Source of the DNA: Cyanophora paradoxa CCMP329
Lineage: Eukaryota > Plantae > Glaucophyta
Reading direction: 5' to 3'
Length of the DNA: 50,643 bases
Assembly (NCBI GenBank): GCA_004431415.1
Contig: QPMI01000041.1
Coordinates: forward strand, 1-50,643
A program made the translations under genes and the position numbers. The notes under the pieces were generated by a model. The model had not been told where the DNA came from, did no database searches, and worked only from the letters and a program-made list of their open reading frames with translations. This document shows positions 1 to 46,989 of this stretch, piece by piece. Position 1 is the stretch's first letter, and every line of letters begins with the position of its first letter.

Positions 1-3000
1 GGAGGCGGGGCTGCGGCTGCCGACGCGGCCCACCCGCCGTGGCTCAGGCGCTCGCCTTCGCACTCGCGCGCGGCGTCTACTCCGTCGCCAGGTCCGCGTA
101 CCCCTCCCCAGCCCCGCCTTCGCCTCGCTTGAGCTTCCGACGCCTTCCGCGCAGGTGTTCCTGGAGCGAAAGGTCGACACGAACCCGCGTACCTCTCTGA
201 CGAGGAGCGCGCGGGCCCCACATCCGAGCGCGCCCCGGGCCCCTCCCCACTTTTAGATGAGATTCTGAGATTCTGCGGGGCAGGGCGAGACGCTCCTGCA
301 CAATCCTGATGGGCCGGCGCGAGCACGGCGAGTCCGCGGAGGACTTCGACGCCTGCCTCCGGTGCGCGCCCCGCCGGCCGGCCGCTCGCTGGCCTGGCCT
401 GCCCGGGCCTTGGGCGACGTCGACCGGCGGCTGCGCCTGCAGGCTCATCCTCGACAACGGGGCGGACGTCAACGAGTACTGCGAGGGCTCCTCCCGTGCG
501 CACGCGCGCGCGCCCGCCTCACGCCTCTGCGCGGCTTGAGCACGCCGCCGCCTCCGCAGCGCTGCACCTTGCGGCGGGCAACGCGGAGGCGGGGGCCGAG
601 ACCGTCCGGTGCGCCCTTCCCTTGCGTCGCGCCCGTCGGTTCTTCTGCGTGATCCGCCCCTCACGCCCCTCTCGCAGCTTCCTGATCGAGCGGGCGCGGC
701 GCTGGAGGCGGAAGGACGCGGAGAATGACGAGGAGGGAGGGGCCGCGCCGCGGCCGGGGCGAGGCCCGCGGGCGGACGCCGCTGCTCGTCGCGTCGCCGT
801 CGCCGCGAGCAAGGGCGAGGATGGCCTCGAGACGGTCCGGGCGCTGCTCGACGCCGGCGCCGACATCGCGCGCGCGACGCGGAGGGCCGGAGCGCCGCGG
901 CGATCGCGGCGGCGGCCGCCGACCTCGAGCTGCTGCGGCTGCTGATGGGCCGCGGGGCCGGGCGCCACGCGCACGAGGGCGAGATCGTCGCGCCGCCTGC
1001 GGCTCGGGCGGCGGCGGGCGGTACCGCCGCGGCCCCGAGACCCGCGACATCCTCGGGTGGGGCTCCTCTTCCCCCGTCCCTCCCGTGCCCCCTGAAACCC
1101 TTCCCCAGGGTCCTGCTGGAGGACGAGCTGAAGGAGGTCTCGGCGGAGGGCTTCGCCTGGCCCGCCGTCCGCCGCGACGCCGACGGCAGCCTCTCCGGCC
1201 GCGCCAAAGGGTCCCGCCTTCAACCCCAGCCCCTCGGCCCGCCCCTCTGAAGCTCGGGGCGGGCAGGTACTCGACGGCGCTGGGGAGGCGATGCGGGACG
1301 GGTCCGAGATGGCGGCCGAGGACGCCCGCCAGTGGGCCGACCTCCTCCTCTGCTGCCCGCGGCCCGATACGCTCAGGCGAGCGCGCAGGAAAGCTAGAGG
1401 GTGCCGCTGGCTGACGGCGCCGCAGCGAGATCACGCGCTGAAGCCGGAGGAGACGGGCGGGGACGCGCGGGGCCGCTGGTGGCGGCGGCGGCGCGCGTGC
1501 TGCGGCTCGAGGGCCGCGTCGAGCCCGAGCCGCCCGAGGACCCAAGAAGACGAAGAAGAAAGCGAAGTGCGCCTTAGATTTGGTTCCTGTCATTGCCGGC
1601 GTGTGCTGAGCGGCCCCGTGCCGGCGGGCGGGGCTGCAGGGCAGAGGAGAGGAGGAGGAGGCGGAGCGCGAGGACCCCGCGGAGGCGGACGCGCGGGACC
1701 GGGAGACGCCGCTGCACGCCGCCTGCGCGTCGGCTCCGCCTCACCGCCCTCCGCCTCGCCGCCGCCGCCACCCGGAGACCGTCGAGTGCGAGATTTAGGT
1801 TGCTTAGGCTAGTCTAACTAACTGAACCTCTCGCCCAACTTGGCCCGCACTGAGCCTCTCTCGCAGCGCTTATCTTAACTGAGCTTAAGCTTCGCCTTAA
1901 CTAACTTAGACCAGCCTAACTAGCTGAGGCTAGGCTAACTGGACTGGACCTAGGCTAGGCTTAGATTTGTTTGACTTTGCCTCGCTGGGCCCCCCGCGCA
2001 GCGCGGCGGACGCGGCGGAGGAGACGGCGCTCTCGCGGGCCGTCGCCTTCGGGCCCGCCCTCTTCGACGTCTGCGCACTCCTCCTCCAGAAGGGCCGCCC
2101 GCTCTTGAGATTATTTGATATCGCCTTTCTTTCGCTGGATCTGAGCGCCTCCGCTGCTGCTGCTGCGCAGGGGCGGACATCGGGCGGCAGGTCGGCGGGG
2201 CCGACGGCGGAAGCAGCGGTGCGTTACGGCTAGGAACAAGCCCAAGAATTCCCTCCTCAACGGCTCCGGCAGGCTGTGCTGGACGGGACGCGGGACGCGG
2301 CGTACCGCGCGCAGCTGAAGCGCGCCGCCGCCGTCCGCGACGCCTTCATCTCGTGCGTACCCCCCTCTCATTTCCCCTCCCCCCCTCGCTTTTCCTTCTC
2401 TTCCTGAGCCCCCGCCCGCGCTGCACGCACGCAGGTACGGGCACCACCCGCCGGAGGTGGCGCGGTTCACGGCGCAGCTGAGGGACCGCCTCCAGGCCGA
2501 GCAGGTCTCGGTCCGTTGTACCCCCCATTTCTCTCCTGGTCTCTCTAGCTTCGGCTTCCGCTCCGGCCTCACTCCGCCCCGCACGCGCCTCCCACGACCC
2601 TCGCCCACGCAGTGCTGGGTGCGCCTTTGTTTTCATTCCCTCCTCCGCCCTCGTTCCGAGGCTGACGCGCGCTGCCCGCCGCCAGATGGACGAGATGAAG
2701 GCGACGGGTACGCCATTCGATTCGCAGTTGACTTTCACCCCTGACCTCGCTCCGCCCCGCGGCCGGCAGGCATCGAGGCCGGAACGGAGGCGCGCGCCCC
2801 TACGCCTCCGCAACGCCCTCTGAGGCGCCCCTGAAAGCCGCGCGCAGTGGCGGGAGCAGATCGGGGCGGGGATCAAGGCGGCCCGCGCCGTCCTCTTCGT
2901 CGCCTCCAAGGCGGGCGCTGCGCCGCGCCCCCTCCCCGCCTCTTCCGCTTCTGATCGCAGCGCCCTCCTCCCGCAGCACTCGTGCGCGTCGGACTGGTGC

Positions 3001-4650
3001 ATGCTCGAGCTCTCCCGCGCCCGCGGTGCGCCCTCCCTGCGGCCTGGACCTCTTCGTTCTCAGCGCCCCCAGACCTGGGGCGACCGATCTTCCCCGTGTG
3101 GGCCGAGGCGCCCTTCCCCCTCGACGACCGCCCGCCGTGCGCGTGTACCCCTCCCCGCCGCCCCTCCTCACAGTACCCCCCGCAGGGCCTCCTCCGCGGC
3201 TGCCGCATCGTCGACCTCTCGCGGTGCCCCGCCCCGCCCGGCCAATCCAAGCTCCCCGCCTGAGCGCCGCCCCGGTCCGGCGCAGGCCGGCGCTGCTGGA
3301 GGCGGGCTTCCCCGCCTTCCTCGCGGAGGTGCGGGGCGCCTCGAGGCCGCCGCCGCCGCCGACGACGCCGCCGACGCCGACGCCGCCCGGGCCCGCCCCT
3401 CACCCTCACCTTCCCCGCTCTTCCCCTCCTCATTTCTGAGCCGTGCGCAGGCGCTGCTGGCGCGGCCCGAGGCGCGCTGCGACCCCCGGCGGGCCCCCTT
3501 CCTGCTCGCCTGGGCCCTGCCCGAGGACGCCCGCAACGCCGCCTCCCTCCTCTCTGCCCTCGCCTTCCGCGGCGTGCCCTGTTGGCTCCACTGCCCTGTA
3601 CCCACACCCCCGTCCTCCCCCACCCACCCTCGCATCTTCCTCACAGCCGCGCAGGGCGCGGACCCGACGGAGAGGCGGGGCGGACGCTGCGCTGGCGGCG
3701 TGCGCGGCCTTCGTGCCGCTCCTCTCGCCCGCCTCCGCCTCCTCCCCCTCCTCCGCGACCGCCTCCAGGCCCGCCCGCCCTGCGCTCGACCTTTCTGTCG
3801 CCTCACTGTGCCCCCGCTTCGCAGCGCGCGCGGGCGGCGGGGCGCCCGTCCGGCCCCTCCTCCTCTCCAGCCTCCAGGCGAGCGCGCCCCCGCCCGCCCC
3901 GTCTGAAGCTTAGGCCGCCCCGCCGGACAGGTGCCGGCGTCGCTCGAGTACTCGCTGGCGCGAACGCGCAAGTTCCCTTCTTCGCCGAAGAGCCCGAGGG
4001 CTTCTTCCCGGTGCCGTACCCCGCCTTCCTCCTCCCCCCCCCCCCCCTTCATCTTCTTCCGACCTCGCCGGCAGTCCCTCGACGCGCTGCTCTCGTCCCT
4101 GGGGCACCGGCCCCCGCCGCCCCGGTCCGCCCGCCCCGCCCCGCCCGGCCCTCCCTACAAGCCTCTCGCCCTGCAGCTGACGCCCCGCCGCGGCGCAGGC
4201 GAAGCCAGAGGGTCCGCCCGCGCTGCACGCCCCCGCCACGTCGGCTGGAGGCGCCGCCCCGTCGGCCCTGGACGCGGTGCGCCCACAGGCGCCGCCCGCC
4301 GCGCGCAGGGCTCACGCGGCGCAGGCGCGGGCGGGGTGCTGCAGGCGGAGATCGCCGGCAGCGACCGCGAGCTCGAGCAGGCGCGCGCCCCCCCCGCCGG
4401 CCCCGCCGCGGGGCCCCGCCCCCTCTCCCTAAGCGAGAGAGATCGCGCGCAGCTGGAGCGGGAGATCGCGGAGCTGGAGGCGGCCGCCGCCCGCGGCTCG
4501 CGGCGGGGGAAGAGGGGCAAGGGCTCGAGTTCGAAGGCCGCCCCGCCGCCCCTGCCGGCGCCCCCGCCCCTGGACCCCCCCGGGGCCGCCCCGGCCGCCC
4601 CGCCCCGCAAGAGGGACCACGGCAAGAGCGGCGCCTGCTCCCTGATGTGA
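1..4650 (+). CDS. Intron-rich ankyrin-repeat / TIR / TIR-like / coiled-coil / CaaX protein, copy 1 (5' end outside window)
   Basis: Manual splicing gives ankyrin repeats (…DACLR|LILDNGADVN…LHLAAGNAEAGAETVR|FLIERG…GRTPLLVA…ETVRALLDAGADI…) and an in-frame TIR domain. The gene ends …RRGKRGK…KRDHGKSGACSLM, TGA 4648-4650. A few exons outside the TIR need 1-bp homopolymer corrections. Confidence 0.85.
2339..3101 (+). other. TIR domain (TIR_2-like) spread over 8 exons, copy 1
   Basis: Exons …-2352, 2435-2510, 2613-2618, 2686-2707, 2770-2789, 2848-2910, 2977-3025 and 3073-… join with no frame correction to DAFISYGHHPPEVARFTAQLRDRLQAEQVSCWMDEMKATGIEAGTEWREQIGAGIKAARAVLFVASKHSCASDWCMLELSRARDLGRPIFPVW. 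This matches the TIR consensus FISY…W.D…I..G..W…I…S…S.WC..EL..A…I.PV. Glu codon at 3007-3009. Confidence 0.92.
3451..3990 (+). other. Second, degenerate TIR-like domain
   Basis: PFLLAWALPEDARNAASLLSALAFRGVPC … DAALAACAAFVPLLSPASASSP … VPASLEYSL follows the TIR strand/helix pattern but lacks WCxxE. It needs frame corrections in C-runs. Confidence 0.5.
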
Positions 4651-6564
4651 GGGCTCGCGCGCGGTCGGACCCGCCGCGGGTTCTACTGTTATACGATTTA
4701 TTGTAATTACGGATACGTATTGCACACGTACGAATTATATTCACGCTTCAAATTAAATGGGGCTCTGGTGGCCGCGCCGTACCCATATCCCCGGCCAGTC
4801 CCTCGGCTTGCAGTGCCTCTGGCGGCAGTGCCCGCTCCGGCGGTGCCCCTTCGCGGCCGGCCACTCTGTCTCTCCTGTACCCGCCATCCGCCGCCCCCGC
4901 GCCCCGGCGCATGCCCAGCCCCGCATGCGCAGCCGTCTGACCCGTCGTGGAGTCGCACGCCGACGCCGCCGGCGTTAGTGCACGCCTCGACCGACGAGGC
5001 GGCCCAGGCATGCGCACCTCCAGAACATGAAATGCGCCAGTCCTTTCATATGCATAGTGACGTCTTCGCTCCCACACGCACACTTTCATTTCTTTCCTTT
5101 CCCGGTTGAAAAGGCAAATCAACGAAAAATCAACGGCCTTTGTTGAACAATTACATAAATATCGTTCGATGATCGTTTTGATTGCTCTCCCCTCACCGAT
5201 GGGGCTGCATCTGGAGCCGCCGGACGCATTCGCTCCTCCAAATTGCTGATGTCATATGTGCATGTATATCCGTCGACGTCGACGTCGACGCTCTTGGGTA
5301 GAGTTGCCGTCCGGGCATGCGCACCAGCTGCAGCTTCACTTTTGCAGCTGCGGCGCCGGCGACGAAGGACGTATACGATAACACCAGCTACAATGGCAAG
5401 AACACCGACGCCACCAGCTACGCCGCCAGCGATGACTGGTAAAGAAACTGATCCGGATGACGGTCACGGATGAAGTACTGGCACTAGAACTCGCATCGTT
5501 GCCTGCAATGGTCTCCTGTACACCTGCTTTGTTCAATCAATTCAGCGATGCATATGATTCGAATTTCGTGCGCGAGCCGATCAAATGCAATTGAAATGAA
5601 TATTGCTCACTTTCGAACAGGAGAGCGGTTTGTTCTAGACTCTTGATTTCCCATGGGAGCTCGGCCGCTAGAACAAGAATGCCGGTCGTTTCCATACTCT
5701 TCAAAAGTTTCGCCGCTTCGGTTGGTCGCAGTGCTACGCTTCGGTAAGGTTGCGAATGGTGCTGCGTAACAAACAATTGCAATTGCGAAGTCCGAAGCTT
5801 ACCAGATGTGCTTCCCAGGCCAGGGCTGTGAAGCAGGGAGAATGTCACTGCAGTTGGAAAGATTTCGATGGCGGCTTTCGCAGTTCGATGCCGATTCCTC
5901 GAGCTTCTTGAGCTTGCCTCCATCCTAGTGACCATCACTTTGACATGTACAGAGCTGGTACCGTAGTCGAGTGCGATGGCCTTCTCAAGACCGGCAGTGA
6001 AGGTCGAAGTTTTCGCTTGGTCCCATGCCGCGAAATCGATGTCGAGAACCGCCGTCATGCTTACCCCTCGAACGCGTTTGCCTGTCCCTGGGTCCTTTTC
6101 AAGTTCGAGGCTGGACTCGGCTGTCCTCTGGATGAAGACGGTGAAGACAAAAGAGGCACTGTCCGTCGCCCCGTGGAATCGTCTCGAGCTGTAACCATGA
6201 ATGTTGCTGTCGTGTACTGAGCTGACGCGCATCTGGAGTCGGTGCCGTAGGCAGAAGAGACACGAACAGAAACGACGCCCGTATCCGGAAATATGGACAC
6301 GCTATTGCCTTCAGCACACGGCTCCAAAGACTGCAGTTTCACGACGAAATATCGGATTTTAGCCTTCGATCTTTTTTGTCTTCCGTAGCTCGCAGCGACA
6401 AGCCCGTATACGTAAGTAGCACTGCTGGGCTGAGCAGAGTTCGTGATGACGGCTAGTTGCGAGGATAAGCGAAAGCCTTCGTAGCCGACGCATGCAGGGT
6501 ATGCTCTCAATGGATCCTGACATAGACTCTCACACGTAAATGCGGGACAATCCTCTGGTAGACA

Positions 6565-8327
6565 CAAGCAGGGGGGCAAGCCCCCCCGCACCCCCCCATT
6601 AACTGATGATCGATATCATGACCGTCGGACATAGCTTTAGCGATCGCACGCGAATTCGAAAGAAACTTACACGCAGAAATGAATTTTTTCGCGATCTGGA
6701 ATTCGAAGCATGTATACGTAGACCTAGATCTGCAGCTGAACTTCAATCCAATCGAGAAACGCGCAGCGTTGACCGTCGGACGTCAGCGCCATACGCGTCG
6801 CGTCGGCCGCGCCGACCTCGATCTAGACTCTCAGATCTTGAGCTTCGGAAGCGGAGCTATAAGATCTAGCGATAGATCGGAACTGTCCCAATTAGCTATT
6901 ATATATTTCGAATCTTGCGCAGTTTGCCAGAACGACCGTCGGACGGACGTTGTCAGGACAAAAGAATTCGAATAATCTTCGCGGCCGCCGGGCACTTCAC
7001 GATCCGGAGCGGGTGCTTATAAGCAGCGGCTTCGACAAAATCAGGATCACTGCTTTCGCGATCGCAATCGCTGCGTTGACTTCGAATTCACCTGCTGATG
7101 CGCCGCAGTGCTCCGTCTGCACAAGCATGCGCAGCAGCGCTAGCTACATGCGCAGCAGCACTAGTATGTACGTGGTTGCTAATATAAGCGCAACTGCAGC
7201 AACGACAGCTGCTGCTGCTGCTCATGAATCATGATCAGCGGGCCTGCAGCTAGACGTCGACTGCAGTGTGTTTCGGTTACTTTCCGTTACTTTTCGCTAT
7301 CCGCCACTTAAGCTGTCCGTTACTTTCCGGAAACGTCCGTTATAATTATCCCGGGCCCGCCACTTTCCGTTACTTCCGTTATCTGCCACTTTCCATGCAC
7401 GCCACTGGCCAGCTTAAACTGCTGGGAAAAACTCGACTCACGCGACAGTCGCGCGGCTCGCGCCACGCCGTGACGTCGACGGCGCCGCGTGGCGGCAGCC
7501 ACGGCCAGCGCGCGCCGCAGGCCCGCAGCGCGCCGCTAGCGCTAGCGCTGCGCGCGCGGCGCTACCGGTACCCGCGGTGACACACTGTGACACGTCAACC
7601 TGAGTGAAGGAAAATCCGGTACGTCCGATCGGATCGAACTGGTAGTAGTAGTCTGGTACTGGCGAAGGCCGAGGGTACCGGATCGTCGATCGGATCGATT
7701 CGATTTTAATTTGTTTTATAGAAGTTGCCCGACAGCTCACTGAAAGAGTCCTAGTCAAAGTCGACGTCGCGGCCCGGGCTCGCGATTGCGACGTCGCGAT
7801 CGGCTCAATCATTTGAATTTGCGAGCACGTGCACGTAGCGTAGTACTACGATCGCGTCCGCAGTTGACTCCGCACGCACTGCGGCATTTGGCGCGCACTA
7901 CGACTGCGAATCCATGTGGCATGCATTAAATTTCTTTAAAACCCAATTAAACTGGAACCGGTTTTCGATCGATCGATTTCGATCCGCGCGCGGCTGGGCA
8001 AAATTAAAATTGCGGTTTTTAAATTAAATTAACGTGCTGACATTTTGAGTTTAGTTTCACTTGGGGTAATGTGTCTGGCGTTATCGCAGCAGATTTTCGA
8101 GAATAAGCGCGGTACCTAACTGTAAATCTGAAGTCAAAATTTAATTTGTGATTCTGATGTAATTTACGTTATGCCACACTGTGTTCTCATATGCGTTGAC
8201 ACAACCCTAAGGTAAGTTTTCTGACCTCAATCAAACTACCGAGGATTTTTGGCTCGGCCGTCCCGTGAAGACTGAGTTTTTTTACGGGTGTCCGCATGCG
8301 TCATAAGTAATAAGTTATAACTTAGTA
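6565..8327 (-). mobile_element. Non-autonomous rolling-circle (Helitron/HUH-type) insertion, 1763 bp
   Basis: The empty site in the duplicate reads ggtagaca|ttcctttcg (about 41392-41408). The insert sits between A and T with no TSD. On the - strand it runs TACTAAG…GCGGGGGGG-CTTG-CCCCCCTGC-TTG (3' GC hairpin, CTTG end). A 14-bp palindrome TAAGTTATAACTTA (8311-8324) marks the other end. No transposase ORF. Confidence 0.75.
7264..7587. mobile_element. Possible nested hAT-like MITE remnant
   Basis: 8-bp inverted ends CAGTGTGT/ACACACTG and clustered TCCGTTA(C) subterminal-type repeats at 7275-7390. No 8-bp TSD. Confidence 0.3.
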
Positions 8328-9135
8328 TTCCTTTCGAATTCTTCCCAGCAAGCACTCGCAGAAGCCTGTGCGAATGTTTTAACTGGGCTCTTGGGAGGCA
8401 TGCGAGATTTAGATCTGTGCTTGCGCACCTGCAGTACCACGAGGAATGAGCTCGGTGCCTGTCTGTTGTCGAATCGTCCCAGATACAGGCTCCGAGGTCG
8501 CGCAAGCATCAGTTCCATTCCAGCACCATTTCTGCGAGCGTTTGCATCCACCGAGCCCGATTGGTCTCGCTATAGCTGTAGGCGTGTGCGCAGGTGAAGG
8601 GCCCGGGGTAGCAATGGGGCGAAGTGTGATTGCTGGGGGTGAAGGCGACACAACATGATCTGTTGGTGAAGGGCGAGCGGTTGGCGAAGGAATTGCTGTC
8701 GGCGATGCGGTCGGAAACGGCGATGCAGCGGTTGTCGGTGAAGGGGAAGGTGAAGGTGAAGGAGTAGCTGTAGGAAACACTGTGCATGTGGGCAAAGGAG
8801 ATCTAACGATAGCCGAAACTGCGATCGCAGATTTACATAATTATTATAAGGCTGTACATGTGATCATCATGAATCCAATTTAAACACCTTCGCCTTTGAA
8901 TCTGTATTGCGCTGAGAACCCTTTGCCCGGGTCCACGCCGTATGTATAAAAAACCACGAGGAGTGCGCTAGACGTCTGAGAAGTGACAAAAGACGTCCTG
9001 CTCAAGGACGCCATTTGCCCGTTCAGTCTCGCTAGAGCTGCGTCTGGCAAGTAGTAACTTCTCACATACTGATAGGGGCATGTCACTGCCGCGCCATCGT
9101 ACAACTGCGTAGCACTCGGATCAGAAATGCTAACG

Positions 9136-9605
9136 AGATAGGTGACCGTCATCAATATCGCGCGCGCCAACGCCGCCAGCTCTTGCGCATGCTGCACCGA
9201 CTGGCTCGCCGCCGGCGCCACATGTACAGCTGCCCGCCGGCCGGCCGCCCCTGCAGCTGTACGTGCGTCAGATGCGGATTCGATATCGATATCGATCTTA
9301 GCTTTCACGCGCTTCAAATTCCAGCGGCATGCGCACGTGCACGCGCACGAATACAAGTCGCATCTACATCAAGCGGGAACGCGTACGCGTCCTGATCATG
9401 ATCATGATGCGCGCTCCACGCGCAAGCCCGGCCCGCATATATTCCTGGTCCTCAGGGCCTGCCGGGCCCCAGGCGTGAGCGCGAGCTCGAGCGCGAGTCG
9501 ATCGCGGTGGTTCTTGCATGCGCAATTATAACTAATTAGTCGGGCAGACAGCGCTAGCGGTCACGAGTCACGACCAGCAGCGCACCTCTGCCACCTCTTC
9601 ATAAC
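9136..9605 (+). repeat. Segment duplicated at 50172-50643
   Basis: Near-identical sequence starting AGATAGGTGACCGTCATCAATATCG and running to the window end in the second copy. Confidence 0.92.
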
Positions 9606-9764
9606 GAGACTCGTCCCCGGGCCCGATCGCGAGGATTCATTCCGTACTTGTACTCCTGCCGCATGCGCAGTGCTGCTCCGCCGGGCCGGCCGGACTCGGG
9701 GTGGACCCGGACTCCCGGAGTCGCGGTGGGCGCAAGCGCCGCCCGCCGCGCGCCTGTCCGAAAG

Positions 9765-10110
9765 GGCTCACAAGGGGCCGTTGTCCGGCGCAGGCGCGGG
9801 CGGGGGCGCTGCAGGCGGAGATCGCCGGCAGCGACCGCGAGCTCGAGCAGGCGCGCGCGCGCGCCCGCCGGCCCCGCCGCGGGCCCCCGCCCCTCTTCCT
9901 GAGCGAGAGAGATCGCGCGCAGCTGGAGCGGGAGATTGCGGAGCTGGAGGCGGCCGCCGCCCGCGGCTCGCGGCGGGGGAAGAGGGGCAAGGGCTCGAGG
10001 GCCGTCCCGCCGCCCCTGCCGGCGCCCCCGCCCTGGACCCCCCGGGGCCGCCCCGCCGCCCCGCCCCGCAAGAGGACCACGGCAAGAGCGGCGCCTGCTC
10101 CCTCATGTGA
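9765..10110 (+). pseudogene. Orphan 3' fragment of the ANK-TIR gene (coiled coil + CaaX exons)
   Basis: Homologous to about 4310-4650: ALQAEIAGSDRELEQ…LEREIAELEAAAARGSRRGKRGK…GKSGACSLM*. Confidence 0.85.
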
Positions 10111-10489
10111 GGCGCTGTTACAGGATTTACTAAAATATTTGGTGGCGTGGGGGGCGGCCGGGGGCGGCCATAAGAAAAATTAATTGAAAAATGCACAAGG
10201 CCCTAAGAACCGCCGGCCGTGTTTTGGGGCGGCCATAAGAAGAATCAATTGAGAAATGCATAAGAGAAATGAGTTGAGAAATGCGGGCTTTTTGGCGCGT
10301 GCGGGAAGCTACAGAATTCCGGGTCTCGGGAGAGGGGCGCCGGCGGGCGCTGCCTCGGGCCCTCTGCCGGGCCAGCCCTGCTGCCAAGATCTATAGCTAG
10401 AACGCCCGGCGGGCCCTCTGAGCCCGGTCCGCCAGGCCGAGCCCTGCAGCTGTGCGGCCCCGGGCCAGCCCTGCAGCTGTGCGGCCCGG

Positions 10490-10771
10490 TGTCGGATGGG
10501 AAGATTCCCACCCGATTAGGCACCCGCGCAGTACTGCGCGGGGCCGGCTCCCTGTGCTGGAGCAGCTGTAGATGCAGGCTGGTGTATTCACTGTGTACCC
10601 GGAAGACTACTGACTCTGTACCCCTAAGACAGGTAGAGGCAGGCCAGCGTAGGCTACCGAGAGGTAAGCCTACAGGAAGAGAGACTATGCTAAGCCACTC
10701 AGGTTACGTCAGGCACCAACTAGCTCTAGTCACTAAGTCACCGCAAGGCCGGGGAATCGAGCCAGGCGACA
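10490..10771 (-). repeat. 3' LTR
   Basis: TGTCGGATGG…GCCAGGCGACA, identical to 22446-22727 except one G/A. Contains a perfect 20-bp palindrome CCCGCGCAGTACTGCGCGGG (10523-10542). Confidence 0.95.
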
Positions 10772-14700: not shown

Positions 14701-17700
14701 TGCAGGGCGCGGCTGCGCATGCCGTGGTATTGATGGCTGGGCGCCAGCCGCCGTACGCGTGGCAGCTTTAGCAGCACCATAGGGATCGGCAGGCGGGCTT
14801 GCAACCAACGCGATGGGTTCCCAGCTGCAGGAGCGGGACCGGTAGCGGCCGGTTGCAGGAGCCGTGCTCGTGCATACGAGTGTCAATATCGTGCCGACGA
14901 TGTCATGCACGATCGCAGGCTTTCTCTTAGAAGACCGGGGGGGCCCCGGTGCTCTCGAGAGAGCTGACGATAGAGCTTTCGCTCTGTCTCTAGCTCTCGG
15001 TGGCCGTGGCGGGTACCCGGTGCGCTGGAGTGTGAAGCCGACAGCTGCAGGTTCCACCAGCTAGGCGGGAACGGCTTTCCGAAAATCGGATACCGTGGCT
15101 TGCGCACGGGCCAGCCACTTGGGGCGCGCTGCCGCGCGGATCATCAGATCCGGCTCATCATTGAATTCCGAATTCGAATCGCGAATTCGAATTGCGAATT
15201 CGAATTGCGATGCTTTCGAATTTGGGTGCCGCAGTGCGGTCGACAGGTTCGCTTCGCTCGGTAGCGAATTACGATTTCTGCAGCTCATGCAGTCTTCCCT
15301 GCCTCATCCTCTCTCCAACCGTGTTTTAGCGGGAGGTCGAGGCATGAGCGTGCCGCAAGGCGGGTGGGGCTGAAGGCCGCGTGCGCAGGCTTGGCGGCGA
15401 GCGGCCGTGCCGAGGCCTGGAACCTGCCGCCGTGCGGTCGCGTGTAAATTTTGCGGGCCGGTCTGCGAGCCCTGAAGGCTGCGCTACGGTGCGAAAAATG
15501 CCTGCAGCCAGCACCAGCTGCAGCATCGCCGGGTTTGGCGAAGTGGTGCACAGGTTCCGGCTCAGGGCGGCGGCAATGCTCTTTTCGAGCTAGCACTGCC
15601 CTTGGCGGCGCAAATCGCGACCGTACATTCGATAGCTGGATCGGCGCTCTGTAGCACGGCGCTCCATTACAGCGCCTCATCAGCGCTCGCCGAGCGGCGT
15701 GCCGGCGTTGGCAGAGAGAGCCGGGCGCTGTTCAGCGCAGCCGATCGTCCGTTCGCGATCGCGAGTCGACGTCGTTTCGCGAGTCGGTCCGGGGCCACGG
15801 GGCCGTGTGCGCAGCCTCTTTGAGAAAGCTACCGCATAAGTGCTCAGGCTTCGAATTTTTCGCGGCGCTCAGCGCGGCTGCTCGGCGGCTGCATCCGATA
15901 TCCGGTCGCGATATCGATGCATATGCTGTGGGCCTGGCCGGGGCTGAGACCCGCGCCTGCAACACACACGTGCACGTGCACGCGGTTTATGCAAGGTAGG
16001 GCTAGCCGTTTAGTTTTGTTTAACGGTTGCAGCCTTTATTCCCGCTGGCCATGGTGGCTGCGGCTTGAATATTTGTGGCGCTCGCGATCGGTGTCCGCGT
16101 CCGCGGCCACGCGATTGCACGTGCAAAGAGTCGTGCGCGGCTCGACAAGCGGCTCTGGGGCCCGCTGTACGTTGTAGCGCTGGCCCACGCGTGGGAGTCC
16201 GACATTCGATTCCAGTCGCTAGCTTGACGCTCGCAATTGGCCTCGGTCTCCCTGGGACTCGGGAGGACGAGTCGAGCCCGTTGCGAGCTTCGATTCGCGT
16301 TGGGGCCGGGGGCCACAATTCGCGGCCTCGTAGGGGCAAGGCCCTAATTCACAGCTTTGCGACGTCCAGCGACCGAGCGTGATCGTGGATTCGCGACGCG
16401 GATATTCGCGGGGCCTAGGCTCGCCGCGAATCTCGCTGGGCTCGTGGCCGTGCCGGTTTTCGCGGGGCAGGCCGGTGCGGCCCGGTGGGCCGGGGCTGGA
16501 ATCCCGATGCGGGTCGCCGCAGGCGCCGACGAGGAGGCCCTTGGGCGAGGGCCCGCGAGGGGACCTGCCAGGCAAGGGCCGGTGGCCGCCTGAATCTCGA
16601 CTACGCCGAGCTCGAGGCTCGCGATTGCGCGGGCTCGAATATTACGGGCCGTCCTTCCGATATGGGCTGGACGGGCCGGGCACTCGGAATATTCGATCGC
16701 GAATCTTTGAGTCCGGTCCCGATTATCGGATTTTCGCGATATCGATATCGGACGGGCACGGCTTCCGCAGTGCCGGCCCGGCGGTGGGGACAGTCTGGCA
16801 GGAGAGAGCCGGAGCTGCGAGCCCGGGCAACCTCAGACCTCAAAAGGGCCGAGGGCTGCCCGCGATCGCAGCTGCTCCAAATCCGATCGCGAGGCTCGCG
16901 ATAGTCGTTCCTTGCGATCCAAATTCGCAGGCCGGCACCCTGAATCGGGGCAACGATTGCAAATTGACGGATCTCGATTATCGGATTCTCGCGGGTCATC
17001 GGACCCCATATGCATGGCCAGGCACGTGCACGGCAGCCACGGGCGGCCGCGGGCTGGAGCGCGTGCAGCGGGCTCTGGGTTTATATCCGAGCGAGCTAGC
17101 GTAACTTTGATCGTGAGCTCGAGCTCGCCGAGTCGCCTTGGCCGCGGGCCAGATTAGAGGCAGCTTGAGGCGAATTCGAAGCGCAGTGCCCGAGCCCCGA
17201 GGCTCGTTCACTGGCCGGGCTCGGAATTGGCTTAATTGAACCGTTCAACGGTTGGCCACGTGCATCGGGGCGCCAGGCGCATTGGACGCTTCGGCGCGGG
17301 GCGCGGGTGCCGCTGTCAGCTTCGGGCCCTGAGGGCAGGGCCTCCGGGACGCAGCCGCCAGCTGTTCGCAGGCAATTGCAAGCGCCGATCGTAGGCTGAG
17401 CTCGTCCTCTGGATTCGAGGCCAGGGACCGCAGCTATTTGCAGAGGACTTCCAGGGCTCAGGGCCCAGCGGCAAGCCGGCCGTGGACTGCGGGGCCTCGG
17501 GCCGAGGGCGAGGCCGGGCGGCCGTTATTTAACAGGGCCGTACACGCATCGGCTTGAACGTTTACAGGCATTCGCATGACCGTGCAATCTGCACGTGCTC
17601 GTGCACTGTGGCTACGGCACCCACCGGCTGCCGCAGTGCGGTTCGGTTGCGCAGCCAAGTCGCGGAAATATGCCCAGGGCCCGGCCGGGTGCCCGGCGCC

Positions 17701-20050
17701 GGCGGCCTCCGCCTCTGAGAGAGGGCGAGACTCGCGATCGGCGGGCTCGAGGTCGCAAGGCAGGCGGTCGCGACGTCGACGGCGGTCGCAGGCAGGCAAC
17801 GGCCAGGGGAGCGGGCCGTGCCGCACGGTGCCGCGCGCACGGCGCTGTCGTGTACGTGCACGTGATCCGATGATCGGCTTCGTTGGGGATCAGCCACGAT
17901 ATCGATATCGATCTGGATAGACTCATGGTCGTCTCGAGCCAGGGGCTCGGAATCGCGATCCCACGTCCGTGGATCGGGGGCCGGATTGGGATTCAAGCTT
18001 AAGGCCCGCGATTTCGCGATCGGTCGGCGTAGGGCATCGTCGTGACCGGGCGTTGCAGCGCTCCTTGCTCGCAGCGGCGTGAGAGACGCCACTCTCAGGC
18101 CTCTGGGGGCTCGTAGCGGCGCGAGATACAGGGCCGATGTCTGGGGACCGCAGGCCGGTCGTGAGGCACGGCATTTTGCGTGCGGGAACTCGAAGGATCC
18201 CGACGTCGCAGCACGCGAGATCAGCCATGGGTTCGACCCGTGCGCTGTGATAAGCGCCCTTGGTCCGGGCGTGCTGCGCAGCTTCGCAATCGCTCCTCTG
18301 ACCGTGGGGCCGGGGCCCGGCCGGCCGCGGGCCACCTCGAACGGCACTGCGGCAGTTCGGCGATGCAAACGGCAGCTCGGCGGTCGCGATCCTGTCCGCG
18401 AAGGCGAGGGCAACCGCGAGGGCGAGTTGCTGATCGTAATTCGATGGGGCCCGGCGGCCGAGACCGGGACCGGCAGGTGTCGGCGGCCGAGACCGAAACG
18501 CCGTGACGGCATCGAATTTGTGCCTGGCGAGGCTTGGCACTGCCAGTCGCAGGTCTGATCGCAGGCCTGGGGCTCAGCAGCCGCGGAGCCTTGGAAGCTG
18601 GGCAGCTCTGAGCCGTGGTGGACGTGCTCATGCACGTGACTTCCGGCCCTCAACTCGCGGCTGAGCTCAAGCTGTACCCGCTGGCACGTGCACGCGGCGG
18701 CAACGTTAACGGCGGGGGCCGAACTCGCAGTGCCAGCAGGTCCTGATCATGAGAGCCGAAATTGACCCATAACCGGATCCAGGGCTCGGAAGCGAGCTCG
18801 AGCTCGATCGCGAGGCGCCGCGCCGGGCGGGCCGCCGGGCGTTCGAGCTGGCACAGTGGCGGCTTGCGATTGCTCCAAGGCTTAGTCAACCGGGGCCCAG
18901 AGCGTCGACGTCTCGCTCGAACAGCAAGCGTGAGCTTCGGGGTCCGGCCCGGCGGATCCGGATCTCGGCCTGACAGCTTCCAGTCCGGATCGGAGAGTCT
19001 CGGGATCCGGACTTCGGGAGTTGAGAGCTTGCATTGAGCAGGCCAGGCCAGGTGCTGGCTAGAGGTGCGCCGCGCGGCGCCTTCAATCTTGGGCCAGGCC
19101 CGGCTGCGGGGCGGCTTGCGCTTTTCGCGACAGCTGTAGGCAGAGATCTAGAGCCTCAGCAACTCGGGTCCCTCTCGAGCCTGGGGCTCGTGATTACGGT
19201 TCGCGCCGGTGCTCGCAGCTCGAATCCGCAGTTCGCATCGCCGCCAGGGCTAGCGCTAGGCTCGAACTCGTAGACCACGGGGCACAGGCTAGGTAGCCAG
19301 GTGAACCTCGAGCTCGGGAGCCACATGGGCCGGCTGTGCGTGGAACGCGCCGCTCTCGGCGGGCCTCAGACGGGCAGAAGTGCAGGCCGGGCCTCGAGAT
19401 CCAGGCCTGGTCGGGGGGCGGCTCGAATTCGAGCATCAAGGCCTCAGGATGCCGACCGGCGCTCTCGAATGCAGCACGCAGTGCTGCGGGAAGATCGTCG
19501 GACAGGCCTAGGCCCTGAGGGGCCGGTTGCGAGGCCCGGCAGCCCTGATCCGAGCTTGAAGCTCGTGCGGGGTAAATTTCCCAATTTCATGCGGGGTAAA
19601 TTTCCCAATTTCGCAGTCAAGGCCCCGAAGGAGCTTGCTGCAGAAATCAAACGCTCAGCCTGGCTCTCGATCGCGACTGCAGTCGAGCAGCCTAGCAGCT
19701 CCGAGGCTTGCAGTCGCAATCGCGATGGGGTTCGCCGGTCATGCGTAGGCCCGGCTGGCCGAGGCCTGGCAGACCCCGGAACTCCGGCTTCTACCCGATG
19801 CGGATCGGGAGTCAGCCGGTCCTCGGGATTGACCGGCGAGCGCCAGTGGCGCGTGTTGTACTCGTCCCCGGGCTGCCACTGGGCCACCTCAGGGCACTGC
19901 GGCAGGGCCCCGGGGCCGCGGGGGAAGATCTCGTCGGGGTGCAGGGCCGTGGCTCGGCGAACCCTCTAGCGCCCCACCAACGAGGTCCAGTCTCCGAGCG
20001 CTTGGGGACTTCCTCGAGCTCGGCAAGCGCGAGGGGAAAGTCGTTGGTGT
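11720..20050 (-). pseudogene. Heavily frameshifted pol remnant (RT, integrase, chromodomain)
   Basis: Motif fragments across frames, in order: FPLALAELEEV…RGFAEP…SSPAAP (about 19900-20040, RT N-terminus); KGAYH and GSFEF…MP…GL…AAT..QR (18100-18261); SHSS…GH…KLYRQLSRE and GLLQP-LPVP-SWEPIAL (14800-15040, integrase zinc finger/core start); LR.CYV…TDW…VHS…HYSP (12740-12870); VHPV (about 11950); IVEAFL..DVRLKGSYLYRVH-W (11790-11855, chromodomain). Confidence 0.7.
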
Positions 20051-22445: not shown

Positions 22446-22727
22446 TGTCGGATGGGAAGATTCCCACCCGATTAGGCACCCGCGCAGTACTGCGCGGGGC
22501 CGGCTCCCTGTGCTGGAGCAGCTGTAGATGCAGGCTGGTGTATTCACTGTGTACCCGGAAGACTACTGACTCTGTACCCCTAAGACAGGTAGAGGCAGGC
22601 CAGCGTAGGCTACCGAGAGGTAAGCCTACAGGAAGAGAGACTATGCTAAGCCACTCAGGTTACGTCAGGCACCAACTAGCTCTAGTCACTAAGTCACCGC
22701 AAGGCCGGGGAATCGAGCCAAGCGACA
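22446..22727 (-). repeat. 5' LTR
   Basis: Direct repeat of 10490-10771, followed by the TSD CCCGG. Confidence 0.95.
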
Positions 22728-23024: not shown

Positions 23025-24699
23025 TCCCGGTTTTTTCGGTACCGAGCTCGGATCCCGCAGGGTCCGCTTTTCACACAAAGCCGCTTTTCACATAGCTGCA
23101 GCCTGCAGAACATGATGTGACATAGCTATAGGCTACAGCACGCGGAAACTCGATAGTGGTAAACGTTGGGGCAGCGTGCTAGCGCTAGAAGCCAGCCGCG
23201 GCACAGTGCCGCTGGGAGCGGCGGGCGGAGGCACTGAACGTAGAAAGAGAGGCGCTGGCCTGGTGCTAGCTGACGACTGGAGCCGGAGCAGTGGGCTGGG
23301 GCCGCCGGACAGCGGGGCGACGGCGCCGGCGGGGCGGGGCGGGGCGCGGTGGAATGGCGGCCGCGGCTCCGGGGCGGCGAGCCGCGCGGCGGATCAGTAG
23401 CGCCAATCCTCCTCACGCAGCTGCGAGCAGGCGCCAGGGAAGCGCGTCTCTCACCCGAACCACGCAGCCCTCAGGCTGCGAGTCTCCGCCCCGCGCGAAG
23501 GATGACAGGCTGCGTGGTTCGGGTGAGACGCGCGCGGCCGCGGCCACGGGCTTCGGATCCGCTCACCAGCAAGAGCAGCGTGCGACGAGCACCTACATCC
23601 GCATCACCGGATGCCGGGCGGCCCGCTAGCTCTGCGCGATGGGTGCACGCGTACGGGTGAGATACTGCGCGCCGCCGAGAACGGGTGCAGGGGTGACCGA
23701 CCAGAGCACGCTCAGGATCGCGAATGAATCGACAGCTGCAGGCGGCTCATGCCGCCCTAGCTGCGATGCAGCCCTAGCTGTTTGCAGACCGCGCGCGGTT
23801 CAGCCGGCTGCGGACGATCCAAGAAGGCAGCTCAACGTGCTCGAAGGTTCCTCAAGGCGGGGCACGAGGCGGCGGCGTGCGAGGCGGCGGCTTGCGAGGC
23901 GGGATTGCCGTGGGCGGCGCTTCCGAGACAGGCCAATCGTGCTCTGGAACCGCGAATGAGCGCATTCTCCCGTCCAGCTGCTCGCCCGCACGCTGTGGAG
24001 CGAGATGCTGTCACGCACGATCTTTTTTGCGCCGGCTTGGGGTACCGCGCTCGCCCGTTCGCTTCGCTCCTCGGGCTTCGCAATGCGCTCTGATCATGAG
24101 GTGGTTGCCGGTGCGCTCTCTCTATGTCGTCTTTCTGCACTTGAATAACCGTCGCGGCTCGCAGTGCTTGCGAGCTCGTGCGGCGCCGCCGAGTTACAGC
24201 TTACGGCGCGCGCCCCGCGGCGCGCGCGCGTGGCTCGATGCCATGATGCGAATGGATTGCACGCCAGGCGTCGATCCGTGAGGCGGCCCAGGCCGTGCTT
24301 CTCCAGGCGCTGCGCATGCATATGCATATGCGGCACGGTACGCCTCCCAGCGCCGCGCCTCTTAGCTTCGGGCTTGAGCCTGGCGCTGACTTTCGATCTT
24401 TCTCCGCTTGCAGCGCGCTGCTCGACGCGCCGCACGCCGACGCGAACTTGCAATTGCGGTACATATGCATTTACGCCTCGCTTCATTCGAATGCAGAAGA
24501 CCTAGCTATCTTACGCCTGACACTACTTAGCTAGATGCACGGGATAGCGCATCGGTTGGGCCCTGAGGTACGGCAGCTCAAGGCTGCTTTCCCGGGAACC
24601 ACGTATCATAATACGTTGGCGATCGACCAGGGCGGATCGCCGTATGCCATTCCGGCCTCGCCCTTGCGAGTTCCGGAACAAGAACTCTCCGGGTAAGCG

Positions 24700-25449: not shown

Positions 25450-28400
25450 ACTGCGCGTCGGCGTGAAGTCGCGCGAGGCCGTTACGGACCTCGGGGCCGC
25501 GGCGGAATGTTAAAACACTCCAGCCGGTGCGCATCGACAGCAGGCCCACCGACGGCCCGCCCTGCGCCAGCAGGCGGGGCGGCGGCAGCGGACGAGCAAG
25601 ATCGTGGGGCCGCGCGCGGTCGCTACGTATACAGACCTCGGGGCGGTGGCGGAGCCTGAGCTCCAGCCGGAGAGTGCCGCGGGCGAGCCAGCGGCCGGCC
25701 TGCCCTGCGCCAGCAGCTAGCAGGTCAGGCGGCGGCGGCTAGCCGAGCCGCAGCGCGGGGCCGCGCGAGGTGGCTACGGACCTTGGGGCGACGGTGGAGC
25801 CTGGGCTCCCGCAGCAGGGCTGCGGGCACGCCAGCGGTCAGTCTGCCTTGTGCAAGCAGGCGAGGCGGCGGCGGCGAGCTTGGCGGCGGTGCGGGGCCGC
25901 GCGAGGCCGGTACCGGCCTCGGGGCGGGGGCGGAGCCTTCAGCTCCAGCCCGTGAGCGCTGCGGGCGAGCCAGCGGCCGGCCCGCCCTGCACTAGCAGGT
26001 CGGTCGGGGGCGGTGAGCCGGGCGGCGGCTCGGGGCCACGCAAGGTTGTAACGGACCTCGGGGCTGAGGTGGAGCCTTGAGCTCCAGCACGAGAGCGCCA
26101 CGGGCGAGCCCCACGGCTGGTACGTCTTTGTGCAGGCAGGCGAGGAGGCGGCGGCGAGCTCAACGGCGGCGCGGGCCGCGCGAGGCTGCTACGGCCTCGG
26201 GGCGGAGGCGGAGCCTGGGGCTCCAGCAAGGGAGCGCCGCGGGCGAGACAGCGGCCGCCCCGCCCTGCGCCAGCAGGTTAGGCGGTGGTGGCGCGCTCCG
26301 CAGCGGCGAGGGCCGCGCGAGGTCGCTGCGGACCTTGGGCGGAAGCGGAGCGCTGCGCTCCAGCAGGGGAGCGCCACGAGCGAGCCAGCGGTCGGCCAAC
26401 CTTGCGCAAGCAGGTTTGCGGCGGCGGCAAGCTCGGCGGCGGTGCGGGGCCGCGCGAGGTCGAGATGGGCCTCGGGCCGTGGTGGAGCCTGGAGCTCCAG
26501 CAGGAGAACGCCGCGGGTGGGCCAGAGGCCGGCCCGCCCTGTGCCAGCATGTCAGACGGCGGCGGCGCGCGTTGTGGTGGCACAGGGTCGCGCGAGGTCG
26601 CTACCGACCTCGGGGCGATGGTGGGGCCTGGAGCTCAGTAGGAGAGCTCCGTGGGCGAGCCCGCGGTCGGCCCGCCCTGCGCTAGCAGTCGAGGCGGCGG
26701 CGGCTGGGGGCCGCGCGAGGTCGTTGCGGACCTCGGGGCGGTGGTGGGCCATAAGCTTCAGCAGGAGAGCGCTGCTGGCGAGCCAGAGGCCGGCCCGCCC
26801 TGCGCAAGCAGGTTATGCGGCGGCGGCGAGCTCAGTGGCGGCGCGGGGACGCGCGAGGTCGCTGCCGACCTCGGGGCGGGGGTGGAGCCTCGCGCTCCAG
26901 CCAGGAAGCGTCGCGGGCGAGCTAGAGACCGGCCCGCCCTACGCAAGCTGGGGGAGCGATGGCGGCGGGCCGAGCGGTAGTGTGGGCCGCGCGAGGTCGC
27001 TTCAGACCTCGGGGAGGTGGTGGAGCCTCGAGCTCCAGCCGGGGAGTGCCGTGGGCAAGCCAAAGGCCGGCCCGCCTTGCGTACGCAGGTCAGGCGGCGG
27101 TGGCGAGCCGAGCTGTGGCATGGGGCCACGCGAGGTCGCCACGGACCTTGGGGCGGCGGCGGAGCTTTGAGCTCCAGTAGGAGGCGCTGCGGGCGAGCCA
27201 GCGGCCGGCCCGCCCTGCGCAAGCAGGTCAGGCGGCGGCGGCGAGCCGAGCGGCGGCGCGGGGCCACGCGAGGTCGCAGTAGACCTCGGTGTAGTAGCGG
27301 GGCCTGGAGCTTCAGCCAGGGGGCCTTGCGGGCGAGCCAGGGGCCGGCCCGCCCTGCGCAAGCAGGTCGGGCGGAGGCGGCGGGTCGAGCAGCGGCGCGG
27401 GGCCGCGCGAGGCCGTGACGGACCTCGGGGCCGCGAAGGAGCCTTGAGCTCCAGCAGGGGGTGACGTGGGCGAGCCAGAGGCCGGTCAGCCCTGCGCAAG
27501 CAGGCGAGGTGGCGGCGGGGAGCCGAGCGGCGGCGCGGGGCCGTGCGAGGTCGCTGCAGACCTCGGGGCGGTGGTGGAGGCTTGAGTTCCAGCAGGAGAG
27601 CGCTGCTGGCGAGCCAGCGACCGGCCTGCCCTTCGCGAGTAGGTCTGACGGCGGTAGCGGGTCGAGCGGCGGCGCGGGACCGCGCGAGGCCGCTACGGAC
27701 CTTCGGGCGGCGGCGGAGCTTTTTGCTACCGCAGGAGGCGCTGCGCGCGGTCCACCGGCCGGCCCGCCCTGCGCAAGCAGGTCAGGTGGCGGCGGCGAGT
27801 TCCGCGGCGGCGCGGGATCGCGCGAGGTTGCTGCAGACCTTGGAGCGGTGGCGGAGCCTTGAGCTCCAGCCAGGAAGCGTCCGACGGCCGCGGGCGGGCT
27901 ACGGGCCGGCCCGCCCTGTGCCAGCCGGTCAAGCGGAGGCAGCGAGCCGGGCGATGGCGCCGGGCCGCGCGAGGTCGCTGCAGACCTCGGGGAGGTGGTG
28001 GAGCCTTGAGCTCCAGCAGGAGAGCGCGGTGGGTGGCCAGCGGCCGCCCGCCCTGCACCCGCAGGTCAGGCGGCGGCGGCAAGCCGGGTGGCGGCGTGGG
28101 GCTGTGCGAGGCCGTGAACGGACCTCGGGGTGGAGGTGGAGCCCTGGGCTCCAGCCGGGGAGCGCTGCATGCGAGCCAGCGGCCGGCCCGCCCTGCGCAA
28201 GCAGGTGATGCGGCGGCGGCGGGCCGAGCAGCAGCGCGGGGCTGCGCGAGGCCGTGACGGACCTCGGGGCGGAGGTGGAGCCCTGGGCTCCAGCCGGGGA
28301 GCGCTGTATGCGAGCCAGCGGCCGGCCCGTCCTGCGCAAGCAGGTTATGCGGCGGCGGCGAGCCGAGCGGCAGCGTGGGCCGTGCGAGGCCGTGATGGAC

Positions 28401-31400: not shown

Positions 31401-32180
31401 GCCAACGGGCGGCCCGCCCTGCGCCAGCAGGTCAGGCAGTGGCGGTACGCCGAGCTGCAGCGCGGGCCGCGCGAGGCCGTGACGGACCTCGGGCAGAGGT
31501 GGAGCCTGGGCTCCAGCCGGGGAGCGCTGCATGCGAGCCAGCGGTCGGCCCGCCTGCGCAAGCAGGTTATGCGGCGGCGGCGGGTCTGAAGCGGCGGTGG
31601 CGGGTCGAGCGGCGGCGGGGCTGCGCGAGGCCGTGACGGACCGTGGGGCGGAGGTGGGGCCCTGGGCTCCAGCCGGGGAGCGCTGCATGCGAGCCAACGG
31701 GCGGCCCGCCCTGCGCAAGCAGGTTATGCGGCGGTGGCGGGTCGAGCGGCGGCGCGGCGGGGCCGCGCGAGGCCGCGACGGACCTCGGGGCGTCGGTGGA
31801 ACCCTGGGCTCTAGCTGGAGAGTGCCGCATACGAGCCAGCGGCCTGCCCGCCCTGCGTAAGCAGGTTACGCGGCGGCGGCGGGTCGCGCAGCAGCGCGGG
31901 GCCGCGCGAGGTCGCGACGGACCTCGGGGCGGAGGTGGAGCCCTGGGCTCCAGCCGGAGAGCGACGCAGGCGAGCCAGCTGCCGGCCCGCCCTGCGTAAG
32001 CAGGTTATGCAGCGGCGGCGGGTCGAGCGGCGGTGCGAGGCCATGCGAGACCGCGACGGACCTCGGGGCGGAGGTGGGGCCTGGGCTCCAGCCGGGGGGC
32101 GCCGCAGGCGAGCCAGCGGTCGGTCCGCCCTGCGCCAGCAGGTCCGGCGGTGGCGGCGAGCCGAGCGGCGCGGATGCGCG
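25450..32180. repeat. GC-rich tandem satellite, unit about 139 bp, roughly 48 copies
   Basis: Recurring GAGGCCGTGACGGACCTCGGGGCGGAGGTGGAGCCCTGGGCTCCAGCC…CCCTGCGCAAGCAGGTTATGCGGCGGCGG. Measured spacings: 139 (28191 to 28330; 30064 to 30203), 137 and 145. Confidence 0.93.
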
Positions 32181-32839: not shown

Positions 32840-33612
32840 CGGGGCCCGCAGCGCGACGCGCCAGCGGTCCCCGGGCCGGAACTCAGAGGACGGGGCCCGC
32901 AGCGCCGGGCAAGCGGTGCCAAGCGCCAGCGGGCCATCTCGCAGCGGTTCCGCCAGCGAGGCCGTACTCCGGGGTGGAGCTCGCCGGCCGCGGGCGCGGC
33001 CGGGGCCTGCGGGCAGGCCGGGACCGCGGCGCGCCGCGCCAGCGGTCCCGGAACTCCGAGCACGGGGCCCGCAGCGGCAAGCGCCAGCGGGCCATCTCGC
33101 AGCGGTTCCGCCAGCGAGGCCGTGCTCCGGGGTGGAGCTCGCCGGCCGCGGGCGCGGCCGGGGCCTGCGGGCAGGCCGGCCCGGCGGGACCGCGGCGCGC
33201 CGCGCCAGCGGTCCCGGAACTCCGAGTACGGGGCCCGCAGCGCGCCGCGCCAGCGGGCCCTCTCGCAGCGGATCCGCCAGCGAGGCCGTACTCCGGGGTG
33301 GAGCTCGCCGGCCGCGGGCGCGGCCGGGGCCTGCGGGGCAGGCCGGGACGCGGCGCGCCGCGCCAGCGGTCCCCGGAACTCCGAGCACGGGGCCCGCAGC
33401 GGCAAGCGCCAGCGGGCCGACTCGCAGCGGTTCCGCCAGCGAGGCCGTACTCCGGGGTGGAGCTCGCCGGCCGCGGGCGCGGCCGGGGCCTGCGGGGCAG
33501 GCCGGGACCGCGGCGCGCCGCGCCAGCGGTCCCCGGAACTCCGAGGACGGGGCCCGCAGCGGCAAGCGCCAGCGGGCCGACTCGCAGCGGTTCCGCCAGC
33601 GAGAACCGTACT
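32840..33612. repeat. Second tandem array, unit about 160 bp, about 5 copies
   Basis: GCAGCGG(T/A)TCCGCCAGCGAG recurs at about 32941, 33099, 33265, 33424 and 33584. No evident similarity to the 139-bp unit. Confidence 0.9.
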
Positions 33613-34592
33613 CCGTCGCCACCCCGAGCCGCGCGGGCGGCCGGGCACCGTCCGTCGGTGGATCACGCGTAAGGCACGATCCAAGCCCGACGGCGCGGTG
33701 GGCCTGCAGCGCGAGCGCCAGCAGGCCGGGGCGGTCCTGCGCGAGCTCAGCCGGCGTGGCGCGGCGGCGGCGTCCGGCTCGAGCGCCGAGGAGCTCCCGG
33801 ATCATGCGCGCAGGGAATGGTCAGGGATCCGGCGGAATCGCGCGGCGGGTCTCAATACACGCTTATAGAGTGTATAGGCAAGCCGGCGGCCGCGGACTGA
33901 CGGTGGGCCCCGGGATAGCCAGCGCGCGCTGGATGCGAGCGTGGCGGCGGGCCCGGACGTGAATCCACGTACCGGCACGGCAGTAAGGCACCAGATTCAA
34001 GCGTGAATCGGGGCCCGGGGCCGATTCCGGGAGGATCGCTGGGAACAGGGTTTGCTCCGGCCAGCCAACGAGGCAGAACTGCTTCACAGTCGCTGCCGCG
34101 GGATCGCGCTCCACTGCAGCTAGTCATGGTGCTGCGGAGTTGGGTCGGCTCCGTGCAATGGGAGGGACGGCCGATATGTGCGGCCACCGGTCCGACAGGG
34201 CTGTTTAGGAGTGATTGCTGTGCTGGCTGTGGCGATTTCGCTTCGCCGCTGGTCGCTTCGTGGCCTGGAGCGGCCGCGAGCGAAGCTGGGCGTGAAGGGA
34301 AACCCGAATCAGCGTACCCCCGGAGCTCGGCGGCTTCAAGCCCGCCGGCTCGGCCCAACGGCTAGTTCAGCTAGTCCCCTGCGGGACGTTCGCTGCAGCC
34401 TGCTGCTCATCCCGTGCTCGCCTCGCGCCGCTCCGCGGCTAGCGAGTCGCTCGGCTCTTTCGTGCCTGGCGCTCGGCTACGGTCTTCTTTACTCGCATTC
34501 AGTCGGCGCAAAACTCGATTTACGCATTGAGAGCGCAAATCCCGATCGCCGGTTCCGATCACTCGCGGGACCCGGGCCCCGCGCCGCTAGAC

Positions 34593-46576: not shown

Positions 46577-46616
46577 GTAAGCGCGACTACTAATAGGCAT
46601 ACTAGTAGCCTACTAG

Positions 46617-46953: not shown

Positions 46954-46989
46954 GCCTCAGGCCTAGCTAGGCCTACCGTAGGCTAGCGG

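Follow-up and report, generated by a model that had tools for sequence, protein, structure and literature searches.

In the brown alga Ectocarpus, the ROCO (LRR) and NB-ARC-TPR genes undergo shuffling of repeats that are encoded one per exon (Zambounis et al. 2012, PMC3341825). The exons of these genes are equal in length, their reshuffling obscures paralogy, and diversifying selection acts on them. The ankyrin-TIR genes of the glaucophyte Cyanophora paradoxa discussed here resemble the Ectocarpus genes in that candidate immune-type repeats are cut by introns at one recurring position and phase, so exon insertions and deletions stay in frame, and in that the genes are clustered, recently duplicated and subject to deletions and truncations. 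In contrast to Ectocarpus, the Cyanophora modules range from 33 to 52 residues, and some repeats have no intron or have extra introns. The order of the Cyanophora repeats is fixed, their substitutions look constrained, and only one private deletion was seen. A second point of comparison is the symmetric-exon rule of the Patthy type, whereby complete exons are lost with the reading frame intact when a deletion runs between two introns of the same phase. The loss in copy 2 of the gene described here is the same in essentials, now in a glaucophyte ankyrin-TIR gene, and is best filed as an instance of this classical rule. It provides a small documented example of how repeat arrays with same-phase introns tolerate the loss of whole modules.

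The window, by which we mean the whole stretch of 50,643 nucleotides analyzed (contig QPMI01000041.1, with all gene features below on the forward strand), contains two direct copies of an ankyrin-TIR gene about 35.6 kb apart. GC content is 66% across the window and 73% in the genes, and the introns are short, beginning with GTGCG and ending with CAG. Self-BLAST aligns copy 1 at 620-4078 with copy 2 at 36266-39673 at 92-94% identity. From position 678 to 4650, copy 1 encodes the remainder of the gene, comprising the last ankyrin repeats, a linker, the TIR, a second TIR-like region, a coiled coil and a C-terminal CSLM. The corresponding part of copy 2 runs from the FLIERGA exon to the TIR region (36326-39616), and the gene is truncated near 39652. 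Upstream, copy 2 has a series of ankyrin exons (34590-36271) that extends from the predicted start to the exon ending in KNRLTILA.

Relatives of these genes were collected at the protein level. An exhaustive search of the representatives with the FLIERGA exon returned mostly generic ankyrin proteins, with P0027 as the sole useful match, and a word search with this exon alone (92 aa) gave neither a match within its length range nor short fragments. P0027 (EukProt tig00000171_g10958.t1) is the public model of copy 2 and maps at 100% to 34593-39616. Used as queries, P0027 and then P0153 led to five paralogue models on other contigs, namely P0151 (tig00021116_g18418), P0152 (tig00021178_g19210), P0153 (tig00021116_g18416), P0154 (tig00000158_g10181) and P0155 (tig00000581_g2243). 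The paralogue proteins were placed on the window by ungapped search and exact k-mer peptide mapping (gapped tblastn ran across introns), exons were handled through the public protein models, and phases were read from the codons beside each candidate intron. Ankyrin repeats and a TIR domain occur in one polypeptide in P0152, which has Pfam matches to Ank_2 (3.8e-88) and TIR_2 (5.1e-21, residues 1322-1437) and ends C-terminally in CSLM. The TIR exons of P0152 map to 2267-3224 in copy 1 and 37851-38820 in copy 2. P0027 itself falls below the TIR_2 cut-off because frameshifts corrupt the copy 2 model.

Laying P0152 along the window relates the upstream parts of the two copies to each other. Residues 477-834 map to 34708-36272, residues 838-953 map to 2-609, and residues 954 onward map to both copies, with residues 954-1752 covering copy 1 from 678 to 4650. 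The upstream exons of copy 2 are collinear with residues 477-834 and match P0027 at 100% identity, and P0152 and P0153 also map to them. Exact mapping of P0152 and P0153 peptides assigns residues 838-953 to five exons of copy 1 at 1-608, the first of them cut by the window start, and these exons encode three ankyrin modules that are absent from copy 2. In P0151, P0152 and P0153, the exon ending in KNRLTILA is followed by 119 contiguous residues and then by the FLIERGA exon, and P0154 has a homologous block between the same two exons. Given this mapping, the TILA exon set and the set at 1-608 are therefore consecutive parts of one array. The initial annotation had described the upstream exons of the two copies as unrelated. 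They do lack shared sequence, ending in AETVR in copy 1 and in KNRLTILA in copy 2, but in the paralogues they are consecutive segments of a single array.

Among members P0151-P0154 and P0027 of the paralogue alignment (A2), the block is missing in P0027 only, where the gap measures exactly 119 residues. The missing block comprises five exons that make up three modules, 33, 52 and 34 residues long, and phase-2 introns delimit each module. The corresponding loss of DNA is about 0.7 kb, of which 631 nt are visible in copy 1; the remainder, off the window, consists of the beginning of the first exon deleted and the larger part of the intron before it. At lineage-diagnostic residues that separate P0151 from P0152 and P0153, P0027 is of the P0151 type at four of four sites upstream of the junction and at four of four downstream. 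Both flanks of the junction therefore belong to the copy 2 lineage, with no other paralogue contributing. P0151 is nearly identical to P0027, yet undeleted; both show an intron read-through that is specific to copy 2, and both are truncated at the 3′ end in the same way, into a downstream element. A substitution private to P0027, E to K, is located 10 residues past the junction. From these comparisons, copy 2 very likely underwent a private, in-frame, intron-to-intron deletion of about 0.7 kb as a one-off event that kept the helix register. This deletion is the youngest of several rearrangements in copy 2. A single in-frame deletion in copy 2, with the 5′ end of copy 1 lying off the window, had been offered earlier as a fallback explanation, and the collinearity of the paralogues and the lineage sites now speak for it.

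Copy 1 and copy 2 become homologous abruptly, at positions 632 and 36279, respectively. MAFFT found nothing alignable upstream, and the self-BLAST edges fall at 620-632 and 36266-36279 in matches of 92-99% identity. The abrupt start therefore marks one boundary of the segment deleted from copy 2; the opposite boundary is situated shortly before the first base of the window. In copy 1 the onset at 632 is held by a 69-nt, phase-2 intron at 609-677 (ETVR/FLIER, the slash marking the intron). In copy 2 the deletion junction sits in a 54-nt hybrid intron at 36272-36325, of which positions 36272-36278 derive from the intron after the TILA exon and 36279-36325 match 632-677 of copy 1. The hybrid intron has the donor GTGCGT, an acceptor ending in CAG, phase 2 on both sides, and a length within the local range of 49-85 nt. 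These results agree with the initial annotation in that homology starts inside introns at these positions and that the two introns, both of phase 2, precede the same FLIERGA exon. Its placement of the junction in copy 2 was likewise sound, although the start that it gave for the intron was one base off.

Most introns of the reconstructed array conform to one pattern. Phase 2 at the same helix position was found for 9 of 14 introns, and the remaining five are in phase 0 or 1 at other positions. In copy 2, the phase-2 introns upstream of the junction are at 34838-34918 (LVR/ELL), 35018-35102 (VLR/ELV), 35839-35902 (SVR/ALL) and 36022-36102 (TLQ/ELL), and the intron after the TILA exon (ILA/ALE) is now the 5′ end of the hybrid intron. 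Those in copy 1 are at 92-154 (SVAR/WFLER), 362-442 (CLR/LIL) and 609-677 (TVR/FLI); the exon after the first of these carries a 1-nt homopolymer indel, which precludes an exact automatic match. The ninth, at 36703-36752 (ILG/VLL), has its copy 1 counterpart at 1057-1108. The introns at 362-442 and 35839-35902 had earlier been recognized as phase 2 at equivalent repeat positions, which the codon readings bear out. The general proposition attached to them, that recurrent phase-2 introns at one repeat position allow whole modules to be lost in frame, is borne out by the 9 of 14 introns and by the loss observed in copy 2. The pattern has its irregularities, and the exon at 35103-35539 spans three repeats without an intron. 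Two phase-0 introns implied by the paralogue proteins, at 228-283 and 35679-35752, would begin with GC (GCGCG) rather than GT and are either real GC-AG introns or base errors.

Structural modeling gives a view of where the phase-2 introns fall in the protein. In an AF2 model of an undeleted segment, P0151:285-603 (mean pLDDT 80.9), all five phase-2 introns of that stretch lie exactly 4 residues before the end of a helix (34/35 in H23-38, 74/75 in H69-78, 107/108 in H103-111, 159/160 in H151-163 and 193/194 in H188-197). By this model, the deletion would fuse residues 1-6 of one 10-residue helix with the final four residues of an equivalent helix. The AF2 model of the deleted segment has a pLDDT of 54.5, which is too low to judge the fold.

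The events that led to copy 2 can be proposed as follows. The conserved array of the family runs from the KNRLTILA exon through three ankyrin modules (119 residues in five exons) to the FLIERGA exon, an order that copy 1 would retain, with its own TILA exon presumably just off the window. A single intragenic deletion in copy 2 would then have started 7 nt into the intron after the TILA exon and stopped 23 nt into the one that precedes the FLIERGA exon. The two cut introns are in phase 2 at the same point of the ankyrin helix. Because phase and helix point match, the remaining halves make up a normal-sized intron of 54 nt whose splice signals are intact, and both the reading frame and the repeat register are kept. 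The deletion is presumed to be real in the organism rather than a fault of assembly, and the hybrid intron at 36272-36325 is presumably spliced. From the intron lengths, about 1 in 15 randomly placed deletions is estimated to be equally clean, a chance that is notable and not compelling for a single event.

The alternative that fares best is that the missing 0.7 kb reflects a fault of the consensus or a collapse in contig tig00000171, in which case copy 2 would in reality be undeleted, as tig00021116_g18418 is. Polishing is poor in this multi-copy region, where homopolymers contain 47 of the 54 one-base indels that separate the copies. Indels outnumber substitutions between the copies in the downstream element. 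This homopolymer pattern reflects residual long-read consensus errors and not evolution, and such errors are why both copies look frameshifted. The existence of a nearly identical, undeleted gene on another contig also favors an error of this kind. However, PacBio consensus errors are typically 1-nt indels, and a clean loss of 0.7 kb is atypical of them. The junction moreover leaves a well-formed intron, and the private E-to-K substitution close by in P0027 suggests a distinct locus. The assembly was made with Canu v1.0 on PacBio RSII reads, a point for the error, but it also went through two rounds of Quiver as well as an Illumina majority-rule fix (Price et al. 2019, PMC6704402). The same work describes a probably haploid genome with 34.7 Mb of duplicated features (PMC6704402). 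On balance, we consider an assembly error unlikely. Regardless of how the deletion is viewed, claims about catalytic "dead" and "live" partners or about domain content that are based on these gene models call for a check of the reads first.

A broader proposal takes the phase-2 lattice as a cassette system. Module loss and gain, together with gene conversion among clustered copies, would then supply continuing, selectable presence/absence variation in the recognition surface of a glaucophyte TIR receptor family, with the copy 2 deletion and a gap in P0155 as the first two cases. Owing to that gap (A2 columns 870-928), the model of this older paralogue is without the TILA exon, the final part of another exon and the first of the three modules; the gap stops precisely at the phase-2 boundary that precedes WFLER. 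Either a second deletion at the module level or an artefact of the gene model could account for it. We regard the cassette proposal as quite improbable.

Even less probable, to the point of being very doubtful, is recurrent exon shuffling, in which intron-to-intron recombination regularly swaps, duplicates and deletes ankyrin modules and thereby diversifies the sensor on a constant TIR. The initial annotation had favored this reading, with the ankyrin arrays of the two copies swapped in the junction intron. Several observations lend it some appeal: 9 of 14 array introns share one phase and helix position, one in-register module loss does exist in copy 2, a block ending at another phase-2 boundary is absent from P0155 (a second case or the artefact just mentioned), and site patterns among the paralogues show exchange of sequence. 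Against it, the searched set contains only six proteins with the region, and collinearity extends to all six, even to P0154 and P0155, whose identity is only about 50%. No duplicated or reordered module was found among these six, which share one fixed repeat order and differ by deletions only, so the mosaic order that shuffling would predict is not there and the junction comes down to a one-off loss in the copy 2 lineage. Both flanks of the junction come from one lineage, and the other deletions in copy 2 are not at phase-matched introns. The excess of amino acid change that diversification of the sensor would produce was not seen either. Third codon positions account for 22 of the 27 mismatches between the exons of copy 1 and copy 2. 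Mismatches affect 1.5% of exon columns (27/1805) and 6.8% of non-exon columns (75/1099), which makes the exons 4.5 times less diverged, in a comparison that covers the shared part only, has few sites, and carries some bias from defining exons by exact match to the public models. The substitution pattern as read from the two copies indicates constraint, not diversification. Swapped sensor arrays in a protist TIR receptor thus made for an attractive reading but an incorrect one, which is now removed.

Other origins for the junction can be set aside briefly. Unequal crossing-over between copy 1 and copy 2 was rejected as the source of the deletion since, within about 50 nt of the junction, the sequence returns to residues specific to copy 2. 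Recombination over long homology between the two introns was rejected on the grounds that similarity at the breakpoint is patchy and limited to about 12 nt, with just GTGCGTA making up the 5′ end of the hybrid intron (the 5′ breakpoint is known from the copy 2 side alone). A tandem duplication whose breakpoint made a chimeric gene was rejected because the paralogues have both upstream exon sets consecutively in one array.

With the single deletion in copy 2 as the preferred reading, the recently duplicated ankyrin-TIR copies here differ mainly by deletions, by exchange of sequence between copies and by homopolymer errors of assembly. Sequence exchange is apparent from the distribution of diagnostic sites in the alignment, over columns 531-1556 (approximately 34900-38500 in the window). 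In A2 columns 531-610, four sites separate P0152 from P0153, P0151 and P0027, and from column 820 onward eight of eight sites group P0152 and P0153 against P0151 and P0027. The calculated chance of so clean a split of four and eight sites is about 1 in 495. This points to gene conversion or crossover between copies at some point from about 35180 to about 35925. Divergence between copy 1 and copy 2 is very uneven along their length. Such reticulate relations among paralogues are ordinary for clustered duplicates and concern sequence tracts, not module order.

Copy 2 has lost more than the three modules. At about 39652, it is missing the equivalent of copy 1 4063-4812, which holds the coiled-coil and CaaX exons, and P0151 has the same loss. 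At the other end, short remnants of the N-terminal array (P0152 residues 38-42, 87-105 and 415-427) lie side by side and partly out of frame at 34495-34650. Among these remnants, at 34593, is the start codon predicted for copy 2, and the truncated start is common to P0151 and P0153. In sum, copy 2 is without the greater part of the N-terminal array and has neither the three modules nor the coiled-coil and CaaX terminus, and it may already be a disabled or at least unanchored derivative.

Both copies are followed by an element of lower GC content (4812-9139 and 39652-42218). Its matches, at 97-99% identity, pair 4812-6564 with 39652-41399, 8327-9139 with 41399-42218 and 9136-9605 with 50172-50643, and this identity is far above that of the gene introns, which are 6.8% diverged. 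The element has an extra 1.76 kb in copy 1 at 6564-8327 and adjoins the truncated gene in copy 2. The element may be mobile and young, or it may be a tract that was homogenized recently. After copy 2 only, a 6.5-kb stretch of low GC content (about 49%) at 42218-48748 contains three ORFs of 148-186 aa. Six ORFs from the downstream element and this low-GC insert gave no Pfam domain, and neither did an ORF between the copies at 17562-18653. Diverged fragments (83-93% identity) of the 3′ end of the gene, from the coiled-coil region, occur at 48748-50039 and 9748-10116 and appear to be remnants of further family members beside both copies. A 6.6-kb tandem array at 25553-32170, located downstream of an exon-like match at 24413-24457 and upstream of copy 2, consists of about 47 copies of a 138-nt unit (77% matches, 76-79% GC) with a higher-order period of 277 nt. 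A second tandem array, at 32920-33615, has 4.3 copies of a 166-nt unit. Finally, a 282-nt direct repeat at 10490-10771 and 22446-22727 is 99.6% identical across a distance of 12 kb.
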